A program made the position numbers and the translations under genes. Of a stretch of 64,000 nt of DNA, positions 475 to 37,900 are shown piece by piece; the stretch's first letter is position 1, and the number at the start of each line of letters is the position of its first letter. Where the stretch lies: assembly GCA_012026655.1 (NCBI GenBank), contig JAAILG010001070.1:1-64000 (forward strand). The letters run 5' to 3'. The DNA is from Hydrolagus affinis. Its lineage: Eukaryota. The notes under the pieces are model-generated. The model ran no database searches and was not told the DNA's origin. It saw nothing but the letters and a program-made list of their open reading frames with translations.

Positions 475-3400
475 AACTGGGTTGTGAGTAAATTTGGGAG
501 AGTATTGCCAATTCTTCATCTCAGACCAATTGGCCAGAACAAAATATCCTTTTATAAGTGTAAATTGTAACAATTGTATGTACCTACTGTAATATTCAAA
601 TGATCAAAAAGTTCCTTAATTCACTTTACATTATAAAATATGATCCTTCCAAATATTGCCATAACATCAAGAAACTAGATAATTCATCAGAAACTCAAAC
701 TCCAATTTCCAAACTTACCTGGAAAATGGAAGAGCAAGACGATGAAATCAGCAAGAAACGCCGAGGGGACTTCACAGCTCGTAAATGCACTATAAAAAAC
801 AAGGCTTCAGTCAATGATTGTAATAAGGGCCATTCCAGCACCTCTTCCATTGAGAGCAAGGTATACACAAAGAAAGTGTCTTCAGCTGCAGCAAAATATA
901 ATGCTCACAGAGAATCTGCTAAAGGTCAGTTGGTGGTTCCGAAGAAAAAGGAATTAATCGCCTCAAAATCTGACTCCGAAAAGAGAAACGTGAGCACCAA
1001 CACTAATAAACAGAATATCTGGTCAAAAACCTGGACGGCACGGAATGATTCGGAGTCTGAGGAAGAATTAAAGTTATTGATTGAAACTGAGAAAAATAAA
1101 ATGAAAGAACTTGGCCAGAAGACAGCAGCCACACAGGATGTGTATCACTTAGAGGTGGTTGGCGAGGACTACATTCCGAAATACAATTCTCATTGGTCAT
1201 TAAATGTGTCTAAAGCTAGTGGAACTGATCAGAGAGCAGCCGCAGATGATGGTGAGTATGATTCAGCAGACACTGATGAAATTATAGCTGCTAAAAGGAC
1301 ACCAGCCAAAATAATACCCAAGATGAAATCTAGTGGAGAAGAAAAGTCTATGACAAACAACAATTGTCAGAAGGAGACGTGTGAGTTAATTAGCAACAGT
1401 GATGAAGAGTCAGAAGAAGTTTCTTCAGAATCAAGTTTGGAATCTGATTATGAAGAAATGATGAGAAACTGTTACAGAATAGACCTATCACTTGCTGACC
1501 TTGAGCAGCTTGCAAATAATTCTTCCAAATTTAAAACAGAAAACAATGAAGATCGTTCACTGGTGCCATCCACTTCAGGTATTAAGATTGCCCAACACCT
1601 GCAAGCTGTGACAATAAATACTGTGTCACATTCTGCTAAGTCAGCTATTCAAAGTGAAGAGAGCAGTGAGGATGAAATCACAGGAAACAAAAGGCTGAAT
1701 GTTGTGCAATTGCCTCCTTTTCGAGGTACAAAGTGCCTCTCGGTAGTCCAGGAAACAAGTGCTAATGAAGCAGAGCAAACCACTGATCATTGTGTACTGA
1801 AGGAAAAGAGAAAAATCACCCAAGAGTCTTGCAATGATTCTACAAGTGCGCCTGTTCTCAAAAAGAAGAAAGTTAATAAGAAAAAGATTGAATCTGACTC
1901 TGACAGTGACATGGAATGTGGCTACAAACCGCCACCGTTTAGAGGAACTAAGTCTCTTCAGATCACACTCACTGCTGACCCTCCCAATCAGATGCTTCAT
2001 CCTAATCTACCTGAAAGTAAAGAAATTTCATGCAACTCCAATTTACTGAACCATGATGGAAGAAATGATTCCAAAGATGTTGAGGGTGGAAAGGAAACAA
2101 TAGTTCCTGTAAATTCAAGAGATTCTCAGACACTCAAAGCCACACCTGCCCAAGCCATAAACAGAATTGCTGTGTCAAATTGTTTAAAGAGTGAGAATGG
2201 CACAGTTTCTTCCAGCACTGAGGCTGCTGCTTGTCATGTTGTCTCGCGAATGGCTGGAAACATGGATAAACATTCACTGGACAATCAAAAAAGACTGGCT
2301 GCATTGCAACGGAGGCAAGAAGAAACCAAGATACAAAAGAATCTCATTAAGGGAGCCCTCTCCAATGTGGTATGTTGATGTTTGAGGAGGATAATAAATG
2401 TAAAATTTAAAGATAATCAGCCCCTTCCAAATTCAATATTCCTTCAACTGCATCTTGATTAGTCACCCATGCATTATATATCTATAAACAAGATTGGTTC
2501 GGATCAAAATAGCCCTTTGGCCTATTTAAGAACACTTTGAGAAGGTAGTTTCTACCATCACATTAATTGTATTAGTGTTTCCTGATTTCCTGGACGGGAA
2601 AAAAAGTCCAATTGTGTTTGGGCTTTATAATAATCCTTGCATTTGATATAGCGCTTTTCACATCTTCTAGATGTCTCAAAGCACTTCACAGAATATCATT
2701 TGAAACCCAAGAATATGTGGTTAGCTTATTAGGTGGATTGGCAAGCACATTTGTAAACAACCAGTTCTGAGTATTCTCTTGGATCCATTATGTCTGTCTG
2801 TTGCCGTCTTTTGTGACGGACAAACCCCCCAAAGTAATGGATTTTACTGTCCCAAACTGGAGGAGTTTGCGTGCGCAGCTTAAAAGGGAAGGAATTTAAC
2901 TTTGTTAACATTGTTAACCCTTGCTAACTGAAAACTAGTCTACGAGAAAAGTAACTGGAAAAACCTTAAATAAATATTACACCCATTTCCTTCCTACACT
3001 GGTCCTGAAGGAAAACTCACGTAGAGAGATCTCACAATGGTAAATGAAGGCGGCAGCATTCATATTCCCATGCAAAACTCCTCTGTAAAGTGACACCCTG
3101 TTGTATCATTGCTCCCATATACGACAATATATTCAGTACCCCAGAAGGCTGTAGATGCTCAGTGCTTGAACATTTTTTTTAAAAATAGAGGGATTAGGGG
3201 ATATGGGGGTAGGTAGGTAACTAGAGTTGGATCAGAAGATCAGCCATGATCTTATCAAATGGCGGGGCAGGCTCGAGGGGCTGAATGGCATACTCCTGCT
3301 CCTAATTCTTATCTTATGAAAGTCTGAAAAATATTATAATATTTTGAACGGATCATTTCCATAGGACAGTCTAAAACCTGGCTCTGGGAATCACATTGTC

Positions 3401-8404: not shown

Positions 8405-9497
8405 TCAAACATTTTCTATTATAACTTGGCCATTATGTGCCTCCAGTGCCTTGGGACGGCCGCCCATCTGAAAGGTGCTATACAAATGTCATTTTGTTGT
8501 TTTCATTTGTTTGTATTAAAAAAAAGCTTTGTGTACAATGCATTTTTCCCACTACACCAGTAGGAGAGCTGACCAAAGACTATTGTATTTGCCAATTTAC
8601 AGTTGCAATGCTGATTATGTATATTGCAACCCCTAGTTTTATTAACCGTGTTGACATGCATTCTGTATGTGTTTGCTGATGCAGGATTTAGGAGCCTGTA
8701 AAGCCTGACTGTTTTTATAGTAACTTGCATCATCTTTGACTTGACTAAGCAAACCAGTATCATGGACATGCGCCTGTGGCTTAAAGTGACAGCAGCAGCT
8801 GCAATCGCACGTCCAGTGCTTGAAGGGAGAGGTGATGCATTGATTGACAATTCTTGGATTATTTTGTAACATTGGAACGCATTTAATTTGAGATGGGATG
8901 TGAGAAAGGTGCAGTAATGAGGTGCATTTATTCCTGCAAAAATTGATCTTGGGACTAACATTTGATGAAAGGCAGGAATCACTTGATTTTTAATTAAAAC
9001 AAAATGGGGGTAGATGTCGATCATAATCGCTGCTGCGCGAATAAATCTGAAAAGTTTGTATAATACAGTATATCCAAATGCTAAAGTTGACCCTGCAGTA
9101 ATGTGAGCCAAAGGCACTGATAGTTGTAACCAGATCTCATTAAGCAGCAGTCAGCCATGTGAGACAAGTTCTAACTTGTTAACGAGTAACGCCCGTTCTC
9201 GCTGCTGAGAGGGAGAGTATGAAAATGTCCTGTGTGTAGTGATCATGTTGAAGGATTTCTCTTCCTTTCTCTGCTCACTGGACGAATCCCATCGCAGAAA
9301 AGCAGCGGAAGCGGCGGCTCGTGTGATTGACATGAAGGGGATGGGGAGATACACAACTGCTGCAGCTCTGTACAGAAAAACAACTGGAGCTTCAGTAAAG
9401 CTGCCGACAGCCACAATCACTGTGGTCACTTCGCTCTGCATTGAAATCTACCAGCCCACATCCCTCTCAGCCTCACTTGCACATTTTAAAAAGCTCA

Positions 9498-9503
9498 AAT
9501 AAA
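9498..9503 (+). terminator. Candidate polyadenylation signal for NOL8
   Basis: AATAAA followed by a U-rich tract; another AATAAA lies near 9040, so usage is uncertain. Confidence 0.4.
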
Positions 9504-9782
9504 CATTTTCTCCCGAAGCTTAAACATTAATTGTTCCATTTTTTTCCACCATCTTTGAAAGTGAGCGTCTGGTGTCAAAAGTAAATATCTACCCCCCCCC
9601 CCCCACACACACACACGGCGGCTCCTCGAGGTTTCACTACAAATCTGATTTTTTTTTAAAAACAGCAACGTGTATTATGAAAGCTGACGGTATTAAGCAA
9701 GAGTCTATTCACACTCTAGCTGCAAACTGAACTAAGCGGTTTATAGGGAAAAAAACAGGAATACAACCATAAAAAAACAGGT

Positions 9783-9788
9783 TTTATT
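9783..9788 (-). terminator. PolyA signal of the CCER1/HEXIM-like gene
   Basis: AATAAA on the minus strand about 170 nt after the stop, followed by U-rich sequence. Confidence 0.65.
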
Positions 9789-9958
9789 AACAAATATACA
9801 AAACATTGGTCACAACCGCGGTACAATGTTGAGGTGGTGCCTTCATCTGTGGCCAGGGAGTTTGACACCCCCGCACACCCCACACACAGCCTGGATCGAT
9901 TTACAGATTTCCCCCTGAAACCGTGTGTATAATAAACCTCCCAATGTCAGCCTCACAT

Positions 9959-10537
9959 TCACACCAGGGCGCTCCAGAAGGCGGCGAAGTCGCGCTGCAT
10001 GAAGTGTTCACTCTCTATCACATCGTCTTCTGACGGGAAGTACTGCAGGCTCTGGTCCTGATCAATCGATCCGAAAAACCTAATACGGAACCGATTGTCC
10101 TCGGCCAAAGGAGGCGTGGCGCAGTCCAGGGCGCCCCGGGCATTCTCCAACACCCCCAGGTAGGCGTCAATGTCCAGGTCCAGCTCCACCTCGTCAGCCC
10201 CGCTGTCGCTGCCGGTGGAGTCTGACCTCATGTGCATCAGCTGGTATTTCTCGTGCATCAGGAACTGGTTGGTGTTCCTGGGCGCCCGGTTGCCCCGCAG
10301 GTTGACCGGCCGTAAAGCCACCCCTTGGGGGCGTGTTGACGGCGCCTGTCCATGGCCACGGCCGCCACCCACTCTAGGGATTTTACCGAACTCCGCCCTT
10401 CTCCGCCGCCTGTGCCAGCGAGGCTTGCCCCGGCCTCTCCGGGGTGGCTCTGCTCTACTCCCGCAGCCTGGCTTGCCCACATCTGACCGCCCTTCCCTGG
10501 CCTCCCACTCAGCAGCACCTTCTCTGCTGCCAGACAT
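9959..10537 (-). CDS. Intronless CCER1-like / HEXIM-related protein, 192 aa
   Basis: ATG-initiated GC-rich ORF; basic RWHRRRRR, LRPVNL-RAPRNTNQFLM (cf. CCER1 RPV-L...RAPPNTTQFIM and HEXIM APYNTTQFLM), acidic region, C-terminal SEHFMQRDF (cf. HEXIM1 SEFLQRDF); flanked by a promoter and a polyA signal. Confidence 0.8.
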   Translation of the reverse strand: MSGSREGAAEWEAREGRSDVGKPGCGSRAEPPRRGRGKPRWHRRRRRAEFGKIPRVGGGRGHGQAPSTRPQGVALRPVNLRGNRAPRNTNQFLMHEKYQLMHMRSDSTGSDSGADEVELDLDIDAYLGVLENARGALDCATPPLAEDNRFRIRFFGSIDQDQSLQYFPSEDDVIESEHFMQRDFAAFWSALV

Positions 10538-10893
10538 TCCTGCCGTGCTGTGTGACTGCGGCGCTTATCTGTTCACATGCTCTGTAGGGTTGGTTCCGTG
10601 CCCGCAAGCACCTGAATTCAGTCTACCTTTTGACTACAGTCTCTGACTTTTTCTTGCCCCAGCGCCTCTTGCAGTGCATGCCCTGCTGTGACTGCTCTTT
10701 ATAACTCGCACCAGCCTTAGGCTTAATAACAAAAACAAGTGAGCGCTCGCCTCTGTCTCCTCGGAGAATACTTGTAGAGATAAAACAGCTGCTTAAAAAA
10801 AACAATGTGTGAGTGTGAGCTGGCCTCTGCTGCAAAATAACAGCCTCAGACACAAGCTCAGCGTAATGAGAGTCGCTCGTCTTCGGGCAGCTC

Positions 10894-10945
10894 TTTATAA
10901 ATACCCCCACAGCCCCGCCCCCACCCCAGCGCCGTCTCCGCCAAT
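10894..10945 (-). promoter_or_regulatory. Core promoter of the CCER1/HEXIM-like gene
   Basis: Minus-strand TATTTATAAA (10894-10903), GC box GGGGCGGGGC (10912-10921), CCAAT (10941-10945) in canonical order. Confidence 0.65.
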
Positions 10946-11789
10946 CAGCCAGCGAGGCCCCTCGTGGACCAGTCCATGTGCTGCAGCCCTCGGGGGGGGG
11001 GGGGGGAAGAGAACGCCTCTGATTAAATATTTCTAGTTCTTTTCATTTGATTTTCATACAAAAAAAACCAACATTCTACAAATCGATATCTTTCAGTCAC
11101 CTCTCCCCTCCCTCAGGCCAGAGAGCCTTTTGTCAACAGTGTCAGGGTCAGAAAGCAAATTCCTCCCTTCCTGCCTCTTTGTGCAGTTGCTCTGGTCCTG
11201 TGTGTAGCCCCCCCGCTCCCCATTTAATTTAACTTTACTGGGCTAAAGTTATTTGTGTAAAGTTTGTTGTCATATGTTTTGAAAGTTAAATGTTAAACCT
11301 GCATTGGCAATTGTTTGCAAAGGTGATTTTTTTTTGCCAAAAGAAACGGATTGGTTGGTGGTGGTTGCCTGGTTTGGACCAGCTCCATTTCTTACGTGAC
11401 TCTGAGCTGCTCTGTGCTTTGTTTACAAGAACATTTGGAGGCGGGGGCACGGCTTGTGAACTACTGTCCTGTACAGTGCTGCACACACGGTCACGTTTCC
11501 CACAGTTCAACCCCAAGCACTTTGAATGCAGTTGACAACAAAATAATTTGCAACTTCTCTTTGGGTGGTTGGGGGTGAAATGATTTTGTTTAACGTAGGG
11601 GGAGGCAGATGGAGGTTTGGGAAATGGCAAATGAAGCTGAGACAGACAAAATATGGTGTTTGTTATGGACCAGATTTGGGGTATGAAACACCATGCTCGA
11701 TAATAATTATAATATTTAATAATCAATCAAAACTTACATTTGTATAGTGCTTTTCACGTCGAGAGGACGTGCCAAGGCGCTGTTCAGTT

Positions 11790-34900: not shown

Positions 34901-37900
34901 ATGAGTCATAACTTGATAGAATGTATTTAACTTTACATTGCCTTCAAATTTATTAGATATTTTATCATCTGAACCTCAGCACAGGAGATATACTGATGGG
35001 GAAAAAGTCCCTTCTGACCATTTAAAGGCATCTGAAAAGGAAAAAATCAAAGGTTATGGAGTGGGGGAAAGGCAGTGGAGTGGGACTAAATGATTTGTTC
35101 TTATGGAGATGATCACAGGTGTGATGGACCAAATGGCCTTTTCTGTGCTGAAACATGATTTTAAACTTGTCATTGATTTATTTTTCTTTCTAAGTGTATC
35201 TCTGGCACCAGTATCAAAGTAGCAATACAAAACCGTTTTTGTGTGCAATCATCTATTTCACCTTTTATTCAGTTACATTTGACGTATACATTATTTCACT
35301 TAAAGCGAAGAGCAGTCCCACAGTTACTGGATGTATTTAACTTTGGGCAAATCAAAACTATTTCAAAACAAATGAAGGTTAGATTTTAATTTAATATGAT
35401 TAGCTTTCCAAAGTGAATAGGTCACTTAGTTTATCCATACAGATTTCCCACATAATTCTTGTTTACTGGCTTTTTTTCCAGGATGTATCTTATTAATTCC
35501 CCTGTTGTGAGAGCAGAAAATTTACGGTTTAAAGAGGATGGAGTGAGAGACATTCTAAAGGATGTGTTCCTGCCTTGGTATAATGCCTACAGATTCCTGG
35601 TTCAGAATGTGCAGCGATTGCATAAGGTAAGGAGTGTTGTGTGTGTAGAGCTTGTAAAATGCTTGTGGCCTGAGTGTGGATGTGCTAATGTGTATGGATT
35701 GGCATATTGGTGGAGATCTGGAGATAAAATAGATTTGACTTTTCATTTGGAATATGAACAGAGAGGCGGTGTAAAGGTATCTCCGTGTCATTGGCAAATG
35801 CTTCTTTCCAGGAAGAGGGTGTCCAGTTTCTTTACAATGAAAACACAGTTGAAAACAGTGACAACTTCATGGATAAATGGATACTTTCATTCACACAATC
35901 TCTGATCCAGTTTTTCAAAGCAGAAATGGGTGGTATGTATAAATCATTTTTAATTATTAAAAGGCCAATCATTGGTTCATAACATGGCTTATGATCTCCA
36001 GGATATGTAATCCACCCTCCTGATCTGTATTGGAGCCTCTCACTGCCGCTCTGTCCTTCAGTGGAGTCTCGTGGGCCAGGCAGTATGTTGTCAATCTGAC
36101 TTGTCCATCGAGGACTGAAACTCACTCCTGCATTGGAGACTAGAATAACAACTACTTATACTTATGCAGAGCTTAATATTGGTGAGTCTGATACTGAGCT
36201 GGTGGGTGTGGGGAGGGAGGGAAGGGTGACTATCAATGAAGTCTAGAATTCACAGCACCTGGTCTCGGCTAAGCTATGTGTTTGAGTGACAAGCATCCAC
36301 AGCATCTTGGCTGAGAATGGAGTGTGGGATCTTTGTAAATAAAATGAAATAAACTTTTTTGCTTACTATTTAAAGCCAGTTGTTGTCAATTATTGTCAGA
36401 TGATCCTAAACCTCTTGTACTGTAAACTTCAGATGAAACCCATGCAGCAACATTTCTAAAATCATAACAGCAGCATTTTTTTTATTTTTTATAAAGCTTA
36501 CAAACTTTACACTGTGGTGCCCAGACTCATCAAGTTTGTTGATATGCTAACCAACTGGTATGTGAGAATGAACCGCAGAAGATTAAAGGTAGGTCTGAAG
36601 TAATCCTGTGAGTTTTTGCAGTTTTTATCCTGTATAATAAATAATAAGATATAATAAATAATAATAATCCTTGGATTTGATATAGCCCTTGAGTGTTTAT
36701 TTGGGGCTAGAATAAACTTTTATGGTGTCTTTATAGGTTTCTAATGAACAAATTCATTTGTGTTCTGGATAGTAGATAACTACTATGCCATGGCGTTTTC
36801 GTGCTTTGTCACCAGAGGAACAAAATACAAATCTGTGATTTACTTGTGCAGTGAATTCGTACATGAAATTTTTGTGGATTTTTTTTTTTAAGTGCTACTG
36901 CCTGTGAATAGTTGAGAATGTTCTTTGCAGATATCTGTATTTGAGATGACCAGGCATTGTCAACTCTAGACTTGGCAAACTGTTGCTTTTTCCTTTAATT
37001 AAGAATTTCACACTCTTTGCTCTTTTTTAGGGTGAAAATGGCACCGAAGACTGCCAGCGAGCTATGGAGACCTTATTCGGTGTGTTGTTCAGTTTGTGCC
37101 GGCTTATGGTAAGCAGTTTAAGTCTGTTTTAAAGTCAAGTGACTAGCAAATTAGATCTCTTTCAGATTGCTTCAACATTTCATTATCATGACTTTGAGGT
37201 ACTGTAGAGTTACTTTGAGATTATGTAGGTAGATGTGAAGGGATAATATTGATATAAAGCAGACTACTGCTGCATTTGTTTCCTTATTTCCTGTTGGGAC
37301 GTCCTCCCAACGTGAAAGGCGCTCCAAATGTTGTTGTTGATTTGCAAAGTTGATTGAGATCTCTCTTCAAGCTGAAGGGTAACTTGCCATCTCAATAGGT
37401 CCCAACCCCCTGACAAGCAACTTGTTTAGCTTTAGCTGCAATCTGCATTTTTTGTCTTGCGTGTTTATGGCTTTGGTCACCGCCATTCTGTTTCTTAAGC
37501 AAAGAACTGTATATATTTAGGGATCCTGCCTGCTCTAATCCTAATTCCCTGCTCTGTACCTGTGCCCAATTCTGTTCTCTTCAAATGTTTACCAATTCTG
37601 TTTAAAATTTTATGGTATTAACTACAATAGCCACAATTTGTGCAATTTTGCTGGTTGAAGTAGGAAATCATATAGGTTTAAAATATACTCCTCAACAATT
37701 TATGATCTGTCCATAATGTGAATTTAAAAATAAACATTATATGCAAGATATAAATGTATTCCATTAATAGGACTCAAGGGTGACAAATTGGGATGGTACA
37801 TTCTCAGTAATTAGTCACTTGAATTTCTTGACTCTAGTTGTTGCAGATCATCTTGCTTGACCCAAATTGCAAAGCTGAGAATTATCAGTTCATTGCTGAC

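Follow-up and report, generated by a model that had tools for sequence, protein, structure and literature searches.

Analysis of a 64,000-nucleotide stretch from Hydrolagus affinis (contig JAAILG010001070.1, positions 1 to 64,000; hereafter the window) revealed a compact single-exon gene on its minus strand, at 9959..10537, which encodes a protein of 192 amino acids. This open reading frame (ORF) is a transcribed, protein-coding gene and the holocephalan orthologue of a gene spread across jawed vertebrates, known in zebrafish as wu:fb55g09. It is a paralogue of mammalian CCER1 and not its orthologue, and it belongs to a slowly evolving clade (A) that is sister to the fast-evolving clade (B) in which mammalian CCER1 is found. 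The best overall explanation, which we hold to be probable, is that of a transcribed clade-A paralogue of CCER1, distantly related to the HEXIM proteins, which may act as a modulator of P-TEFb. As a sequence the gene is not new, since many genomes already have it annotated. What appears to be unreported so far is the split into clades A and B, the HEXIM-like plan of the family and a lamprey homologue that bridges two Pfam families, which domain databases may already link.

The gene and its transcript

The ORF is intact, with an ATG start and 192 codons plus a stop in one exon, and its G+C content is 63% against 40% for the window. Transcription was examined with three polyadenylated (polyA) RNA runs (X2-X4), all from one sample of a close relative of the window's species, together with one DNA-type run (X1). 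The polyA reads placed on 8800-11600 number 370, 746 and 510 in the three runs. Read depth is about 20-82x over the bins covering 9834-10867, declines in the bin 9740-9833 and falls to zero from 10868 onwards, with read ends clustering at 10841 and 10851. Because no splice joint occurs in the RNA over the gene, the transcript is single-exon and unspliced. An adjacent exon of NOL8, on the plus strand (8800-9081, 0.3-8x), served as an internal control for orientation: first mates are plus over the gene and minus over this exon, so the RNA of the gene comes from the minus strand. Its depth is about 10 times that of the NOL8 exon. These stranded polyA reads delimit an approximate transcript of about 1.1 kb (9760..10867, minus strand), with a 5' untranslated region (UTR) of about 330 nucleotides, the coding sequence and a 3'UTR of about 190 nucleotides.

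The RNA of the relative differs from the coding sequence of the window at two places only, P142S and D111E, each within a linker of low conservation, and its X1 contigs show four differences, namely these two and two synonymous ones. About five further differences separate the RNA from the window in the 328-nucleotide 5'UTR.

A TATA-like element found by pattern scan (10894..10899, minus strand) lies about 30 nucleotides upstream of the RNA start and is a putative promoter element. Upstream of it, a GC box (10915-10920) and a CCAAT box (10941-10945) match their consensus in minus-strand orientation, together spanning 10915..10945. At the other end, the polyadenylation signal AATAAA at 9783..9788 is the sole one on the minus strand in 9600-11100, and the RNA fades in its bin. 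An earlier note, made from the letters of this DNA, had described an intact single-exon ORF of 192 amino acids with its motifs in a stated order, its own promoter and a polyA signal, and had looked to conservation and expression for support. All of these motifs and elements were located, the RNA carries no joints and its ends agree with the elements, and conservation and expression are borne out by 228 homologues and by the polyA RNA of the relative, which covers the gene.

The 5'UTR (10538-10865, minus strand) contains two upstream ATGs, at 10679 (opening an upstream frame of 18 codons) and at 10578 (1 codon), neither of them in frame with the coding sequence. Reads of the relative diverge from the window at a C-rich tract near 9862, with loose ends in all three runs, and an extra G follows 10783 in 147/168 of its RNA reads. 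Both are UTR differences between the two organisms and not splice sites. On the plus strand, an antisense ORF of 158 amino acids (10170-10646) overlaps the coding sequence; we take it for a shadow of this G+C-rich sequence, because opposite-strand reads over the ORF reach at most 3x, against 30-80x on the strand of the gene.

Homologues and conserved blocks

A homologue search returned 228 proteins at E<=0.01; the counts given below refer to the 120 listed of these 228. The best match, an uncharacterised protein of Callorhinchus milii with the same length of 192 amino acids, is 84% identical over 192 residues. It is followed by proteins of sharks and a sawfish, 59-64% identical and named 'wu:fb55g09', and then by proteins of the coelacanth, gar, bowfin, many teleosts, geckos, a lizard and birds; many of the homologues were automatically named 'coiled-coil domain-containing glutamate-rich protein 1' (CCER1). 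Amphibian members of clade A were found in Discoglossus, Pleurodeles, Xenopus and Pelobates. The window protein is of the same length class as the wu:fb55g09 group and, over the conserved parts, 59-84% identical to its cartilaginous-fish members and 45-56% to its bony-vertebrate members. Two motifs, P-x-NTNQFLM and FM-x-[RKQ]-DF, are kept in 120/120 listed homologues. An alignment of 38 sequences, from sharks to birds, contains 42 invariant columns that fall into three blocks: LRP..RAP.NTNQFLM.EKYQ..H..SDS.G, D.D..L..LEN.RG.L and S..Y.PSE.D......FM..DF..F. A literature search found no functional study of the group.

Along the ORF the motifs follow one another in the order RWHRRRRR (residues 40-47), APRNTNQFLM (85-94), an acidic linker (105-126) and SEHFMQRDF (176-184), and the stop codon is reached 8 residues past the last of these. 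The basic stretch RRGRGK-P-RWHRRRRR (residues 33-47; 10397..10441, minus strand) is part of a region with 17 Lys and Arg among 54 residues; across the aligned proteins of clade A it is mainly the composition of this stretch that is conserved. The core block LRPVN..G.RAP-R-NTNQFLMHEKYQLMHMRSDS.G (residues 75-109; 10211..10315, minus strand), recognised from its invariant columns, contains the HEXIM-like motif PxNT-QFLM (residues 86-94; 10256-10282, minus strand). This block is aligned from position 37 of the Pfam HEXIM profile, and a helix is predicted there at residues 89-104.

The acidic linker, with 8 Asp and Glu and no Lys or Arg, and the conserved D.D.YLGVLENARGAL block (residues 122-138) together occupy 10124..10225 of the minus strand. 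Invariant columns of the latter are D122, D124, L127, L130, E131, N132, R134, G135 and L137; a helix is predicted at residues 123-134, and the block is also aligned in a lamprey homologue. The C-terminal block S.QYFPSEDD...SE.FMQRDF..F (residues 163-188; 9974..10051, minus strand), likewise marked by invariant columns, leaves only 4 residues before the stop. It coincides with a confidently predicted helix (170-191, predicted local distance difference test, pLDDT, about 96), and the Pfam HEXIM match ends here, with residue 186 on profile position 110. In listed homologues the tail past FM-x-x-DF measures 8-23 amino acids in 119/120, the one exception having 70 residues.

Structure prediction with AlphaFold2 on the 38-sequence alignment gave a mostly disordered chain (mean pLDDT 59, predicted template modelling score 0.22, 58 residues below a pLDDT of 50), in which the only helices are three short ones (89-104, 123-134 and 170-191), located at exactly the three conserved blocks. 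The protein is predicted to consist of a basic N-terminal half, a PxNT-QFLM helix, an acidic linker, an YLGVLENARGAL helix and a C-terminal FMQRDF helix, without a coiled coil.

The holocephalan A proteins, those of the window and of Callorhinchus, differ from the rest of the group in lacking RAPGM before the PxNT motif (window 10256-10315, residues 75-94), five residues that are present in 36/36 other aligned clade-A proteins. One copy of a short RAP repeat seems to have been deleted in holocephalans specifically, which probably explains why the ORF scores below the Pfam cut-off for CCER1.

Two paralogous clades

With a profile built from the 38 sequences, a search of 1.84 billion representatives without restriction on length retrieved only 29 clusters at E<=0.001, which comprise, besides clade A, proteins with NTTQF instead of NTNQF. 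Proteins of this second type come from Callorhinchus (P0134), a sawshark, Latimeria (P0135), a caecilian, Pleurodeles (P0138), Podarcis (P0140) and turtles, and they include mammal-type CCER1 sequences (Logan records, and one within a chinchilla ZNF839 model). Both types occur, with one protein each, in Callorhinchus, Latimeria, Podarcis and Pleurodeles. In a maximum likelihood tree of 32 sequences, computed with IQ-TREE and rooted on the lamprey, type A (18 rows, support 85/94, recovered in 85% of bootstrap trees) and type B (12 rows, 90/88) stand on opposite sides of one branch, and each side runs from cartilaginous fishes through tetrapods. The window protein pairs with the Callorhinchus A protein at 100/98, and mammal-type CCER1 falls inside B. 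End branches measure 0.01-0.7 in A versus 0.02-2.7 in B. An hhalign comparison of the two clades gave 99.5% over 56 columns. To judge from these sequences, the A/B duplication is older than the crown of jawed vertebrates.

The Pfam CCER1 family (PF15482) is the best match of the ORF (21.8 bits, E=1.9e-4); it is matched by 38/38 aligned homologues at E<=0.1, with a best value of 6.4e-14, and most of the listed homologues carry it as a precomputed match. The Pfam entry on CCER1 mentions RPV and NTTQF motifs. Like mammalian CCER1 (C12orf12), the window gene is a single-exon, CpG-rich gene whose product has a core homologous to LRPVN..G.RAPGMRAP.NT.QF and predicted disorder. Unlike it, it has no Glu-rich region, a region absent from the whole clade-A alignment and present in mammal-type sequences such as P0144; it has NTNQFLM where CCER1 has NTTQFIM, keeps the C-terminal FMQRDF helix and has evolved much more slowly. 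The loci also differ: human CCER1 is described, in the accessible part of a report on a 12q21.33 deletion interval, beside EPYC, KERA, LUM and DCN in a cluster of small leucine-rich proteoglycan (SLRP) genes (PMC3997350), whereas the gene studied here lies between NOL8 and IARS1. Many annotations call the clade-A gene 'CCER1', and both the tree and the gene neighbours identify it as a paralogue. Since the window gene is not an orthologue of mammalian CCER1, transfer of function from mouse CCER1 is therefore unsafe.

The 120 listed homologues include no mammal in any named row, and clade A was likely lost in mammals. One mammal-type B sequence is itself part of an odd model: P0141 of Chinchilla lanigera (860 amino acids), annotated as 'zinc finger protein 839 isoform X2', is in its N-terminal part a mammal-type CCER1, including LLRPVNLYGWRAPGMRAPRNTTQFIM, and is probably an annotation chimera.

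Kinship to HEXIM

HEXIM1 is encoded by an intronless gene and carries an FLQRDF motif, given in the earlier note in the longer form EFLQRDF. The other HEXIM motif named there, PYNTTQFLM, is confirmed by the accessible text of a HEXIM1 study (PMC12901311), according to which a basic region of two Arg/Lys stretches parted by Pro-Ser binds 7SK RNA and is followed by a linker whose conserved 202-PYNTTQFLM-210 binds and inactivates Cdk9, then by an acidic region and by a coiled coil (254-359) responsible for dimerisation and for the binding of cyclin T1. The window protein resembles HEXIM1 and HEXIM2 (PF15313) in having a basic Arg-rich stretch, P-x-NT-x-QFLM, an acidic region and an F-x-x-RDF helix in the same order, and a central region that is largely disordered, as reported for HEXIM1 in the same text (PMC12901311). 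Its PRNTNQFLM is identical to PYNTTQFLM at 7/9 positions, the Tyr being replaced. In contrast to the HEXIM proteins, it has neither the C-terminal coiled coil nor the long N-terminal region; the Tyr of PYNT is replaced and variable throughout clade A, and clade A has the additional invariant blocks LRPVN, HEKYQ..H.RSDS, YLGVLENARGAL and QYFPSEDD.

After CCER1, the second-best Pfam family for the ORF is HEXIM (16.7 bits, E=0.009), with a collinear match of residues 84-186 on positions 37-110 of the 142 of the profile, from RAP-R-NT to FMQRDF. HEXIM matches at E<=0.1 were obtained for 36/38 clade-A proteins (best 1.2e-4, all below the cut-off), and no other family recurs. Among B-type and lamprey proteins, 8/10 match HEXIM at E<=1; the Callorhinchus B-type protein reaches 26.6 bits (E=7.8e-6) over both motifs. 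The HEXIM matches all start at profile position 37-38, on '(R)AP-x-NT'.

The strongest of these matches is that of a lamprey protein, P0139, which scores 35.3 bits (E=1.6e-8) in two stretches, above the curated cut-off of 29. It has PF15313 as its precomputed domain and no Pfam CCER1 match. The clade-A profile retrieved it at E=2.7e-10, an alignment of the two, 123 columns long, takes in all three blocks (hhalign 98.7%, E=2.7e-16), and in a local phmmer run the lamprey region matched clade-A proteins down to E=2.5e-5. The lamprey protein ends 10 residues past FMERDF. Its HEXIM alignment covers its basic region, whereas that of the ORF leaves the basic stretch at residues 33-47 uncovered. By its sequence, P0139 is a full member of the family and a better bridge to HEXIM than the ORF. 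The 90% cluster of P0139 also contains proteins named 'PAK4-inhibitor INKA2-like' (P0139, P0147-P0151); these names arise because the 543-amino acid model P0151 fuses the two, which suggests that the lamprey gene adjoins an INKA2-like gene and that the INKA2 name is an artefact.

The profile matches to HEXIM and CCER1 that the earlier note had anticipated were thus obtained, in the ORF below both cut-offs, and the lack of a Glu-rich region and of room for a coiled coil holds, with 119/120 listed homologues alike. Its proposal of a 'bridge' between the two families stands insofar as the protein matches both, but the gene is not a one-off: it is an orthologue of a widespread gene, and the lamprey homologue fills that place better. 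Common descent of the CCER1 family and HEXIM is, on the comparisons above, probable. That the whole CCER1 family retains the central HEXIM plan in the same order, and ends where the cyclin-T-binding coiled coil of HEXIM would start, appears well supported, if indirectly.

Proposed function

Set in a chain that is otherwise disordered, the three invariant helical blocks have the appearance of docking motifs. The invariant NT-x-QFLM helix would contact a cyclin-dependent kinase (CDK), most likely CDK9, as 202-PYNTTQFLM-210 of HEXIM does. Lacking a coiled coil, the protein would be monomeric and unable to hold cyclin T, and with neither that domain nor the conserved Tyr it would modulate or compete in the control of P-TEFb rather than act as a 7SK-dependent inhibitor. 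RNA binding by the basic stretch is possible. Taken as one joint claim, this set of a CDK contact, a monomeric modulator or competitor of P-TEFb and an RNA-binding basic stretch is tentative, and on the analogy with HEXIM we consider it possible but rather doubtful. At the position of HEXIM Tyr203, the 120 listed homologues of clade A have different residues (66 with R, 46 with K, 6 with Q, and one each with E and M), which argues against a simple HEXIM-like kinase block.

Hints of somatic expression of family members come from the accessible parts of two studies, in which wu:fb55g09 is up-regulated in grass-carp muscle (PMC13361329) and a 'C12orf12 homolog', which could be either paralogue, is present in the white-shark heart transcriptome (PMC3832898). 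A broader view would hold that the whole CCER1 family descends from HEXIM and keeps a working CDK9-contacting helix, clade A being an ancient, somatic, monomeric regulator of P-TEFb and pause release, independent of 7SK or competing with it, in all jawed vertebrates except, apparently, mammals; we regard this as unlikely in its full form.

To our knowledge, no protein inhibitors other than HEXIM1 and HEXIM2 lock P-TEFb into the 7SK particle. If the proposed function is true, clade A would be a second deeply conserved vertebrate family with the central plan of HEXIM and without its cyclin-T-binding domain, and therefore a new kind of player in the control of elongation. It would also provide a testable lead on the way in which transcripts of transition proteins and protamines are raised by CCER1 in mammalian spermatids. 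The gene is amenable to study in zebrafish, Xenopus and chicken. A literature search found no paper naming both CCER1 and HEXIM.

Alternative explanations

Several points weigh against the favoured reading of a clade-A CCER1 paralogue related to HEXIM and acting on P-TEFb. The scores of the ORF lie below the gathering cut-offs of 27 bits for CCER1 and 29 bits for HEXIM, and the 36/38 weak HEXIM matches are not independent, the proteins being homologous to one another. The tree was built on a short conserved core, which limits its strength, and the branches of clade B are very long; the likely loss of clade A in mammals is judged from 120 listed homologues of the 228. The link to HEXIM rests on Pfam's own HEXIM model, and part of the lamprey score may be supplied by a basic, Gln-rich stretch. 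The position of Tyr203, variable in clade A, is occupied by H in the lamprey, and the basic region is conserved in composition alone. The search of the 1.84 billion representatives with the clade-A profile returned no canonical HEXIM at E<=0.001, and PDB sequences gave nothing at E<=10 with either the 38-sequence profile or the ORF alone. A literature search on clade A yielded no interaction, localisation or phenotype, only the passing mention in fish muscle. The same empty profile search, the low HEXIM score of the ORF, an identical stretch of just 7-8/9 residues and the ESM Atlas, which offered no usable match for the ORF once CCER1 clusters were skipped, would also fit a likeness to HEXIM that is a short linear motif arisen by chance or convergence in a family unrelated to it by descent. 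This we consider improbable: in the ORF and in the Callorhinchus B-type protein, two motifs separated by about 90 residues are matched collinearly, the lamprey homologue passes the curated HEXIM cut-off in two stretches, which take in the basic region upstream of the motif, and the arrangement of the elements and of their charges (basic, motif, acidic, F-x-x-RDF helix) are those of HEXIM1 as described in the available text of PMC12901311. Still more radical is the idea that the ORF is no gene of its own but a chance frame in a CpG-rich stretch, a pseudogene or a part of NOL8 or IARS1 transcripts, for which the 63% G+C content, the long frame on the opposite strand and the scores below the Pfam cut-offs might be cited. 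It is refuted by the deep conservation of the protein and by a strand-specific, unspliced transcript with its own ends, far deeper than the NOL8 exon and nearly free of opposite-strand reads.

A more serious alternative concerns function. Mammalian CCER1 is, according to the accessible text of PMC10713660, a germline-specific, phase-separating protein required for the transition from histones to protamines, and in the mouse it is an intrinsically disordered nuclear protein that raises Tnp1/2 and Prm1/2 transcripts; CDK9, 7SK and P-TEFb are not mentioned in that text. The window protein could work in the same way, as a disordered nuclear condensate scaffold that affects chromatin or transcription without P-TEFb or 7SK, its HEXIM-like motifs being inherited and turned to a new partner. 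The predicted disorder of most of the ORF and the loss of the Tyr of PYNT in clade A are consistent with this. However, the Glu-rich region of mammalian CCER1 is missing from clade A, which, to go by its end branches, has evolved far more slowly than clade B, and the invariant residues of clade A are concentrated in three short helical blocks, which are typical of specific binding motifs and not of bulk condensate drivers. The family transcripts in fish muscle and shark heart are moreover somatic, whereas mouse CCER1 is described as germline-specific (PMC10713660, in part). We therefore regard a scaffold of this kind as having clearly less than an even chance.

Genomic context and other observations

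The gene lies between NOL8 and IARS1 and is convergent with NOL8. A large NOL8 exon (600..2378, plus strand) with an ORF of 592 codons matches nucleolar protein 8 of the whale shark Rhincodon typus at E=1.3e-78; of its 91 matches in all, nearly every named one is NOL8. A RAD51-interacting lead for this exon in the ESM Atlas (score 0.76) was weak and unrelated and was dropped. An exon of IARS1, the cytoplasmic isoleucine-tRNA ligase, at 35480..35635 of the plus strand matches residues 625-676 of PDB 9w01_B at E=1.7e-22. Searches of five neighbouring ORFs against Pfam gave nothing useful. At gathering score, Rfam returned no family in the whole 64-kb window, so there is no annotated snoRNA or other known RNA in the NOL8 and IARS1 introns here.

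As an indirect proxy for linkage, the A-type protein and NOL8 report an equal longest contig in Pelobates cultripes (152836226), Gekko kuhli (151239192) and an NCBI record (1023967), and in Gekko kuhli the locus tags of the two genes are 21 apart. By the same kind of indirect proxy, the A and B proteins of Podarcis and of Pleurodeles come from contigs of differing size. Human NOL8 and IARS1 are presumably located at 9q22, beside a second SLRP cluster that is paralogous to the one at 12q21.33. Such a placement would fit an origin of clades A and B by whole-genome duplication.

In the 3' region of NOL8 (8800-9560, plus strand), the plus-strand RNA of the relative ends near 9081 and the stretch 9082-9551 is almost free of reads; this read-poor stretch ends at a plus-strand AATAAA near 9499. 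It may be that NOL8 ends further upstream than one would judge from the sequence, or that the two organisms differ in this respect. The region between the two convergent 3' ends contains, at 9590-9615, a run of C and then a (CA)n tract, and the X1 contigs break there. Finally, a G-run of about 17 is located at 10985-11003, upstream of the promoter-like elements of the gene.

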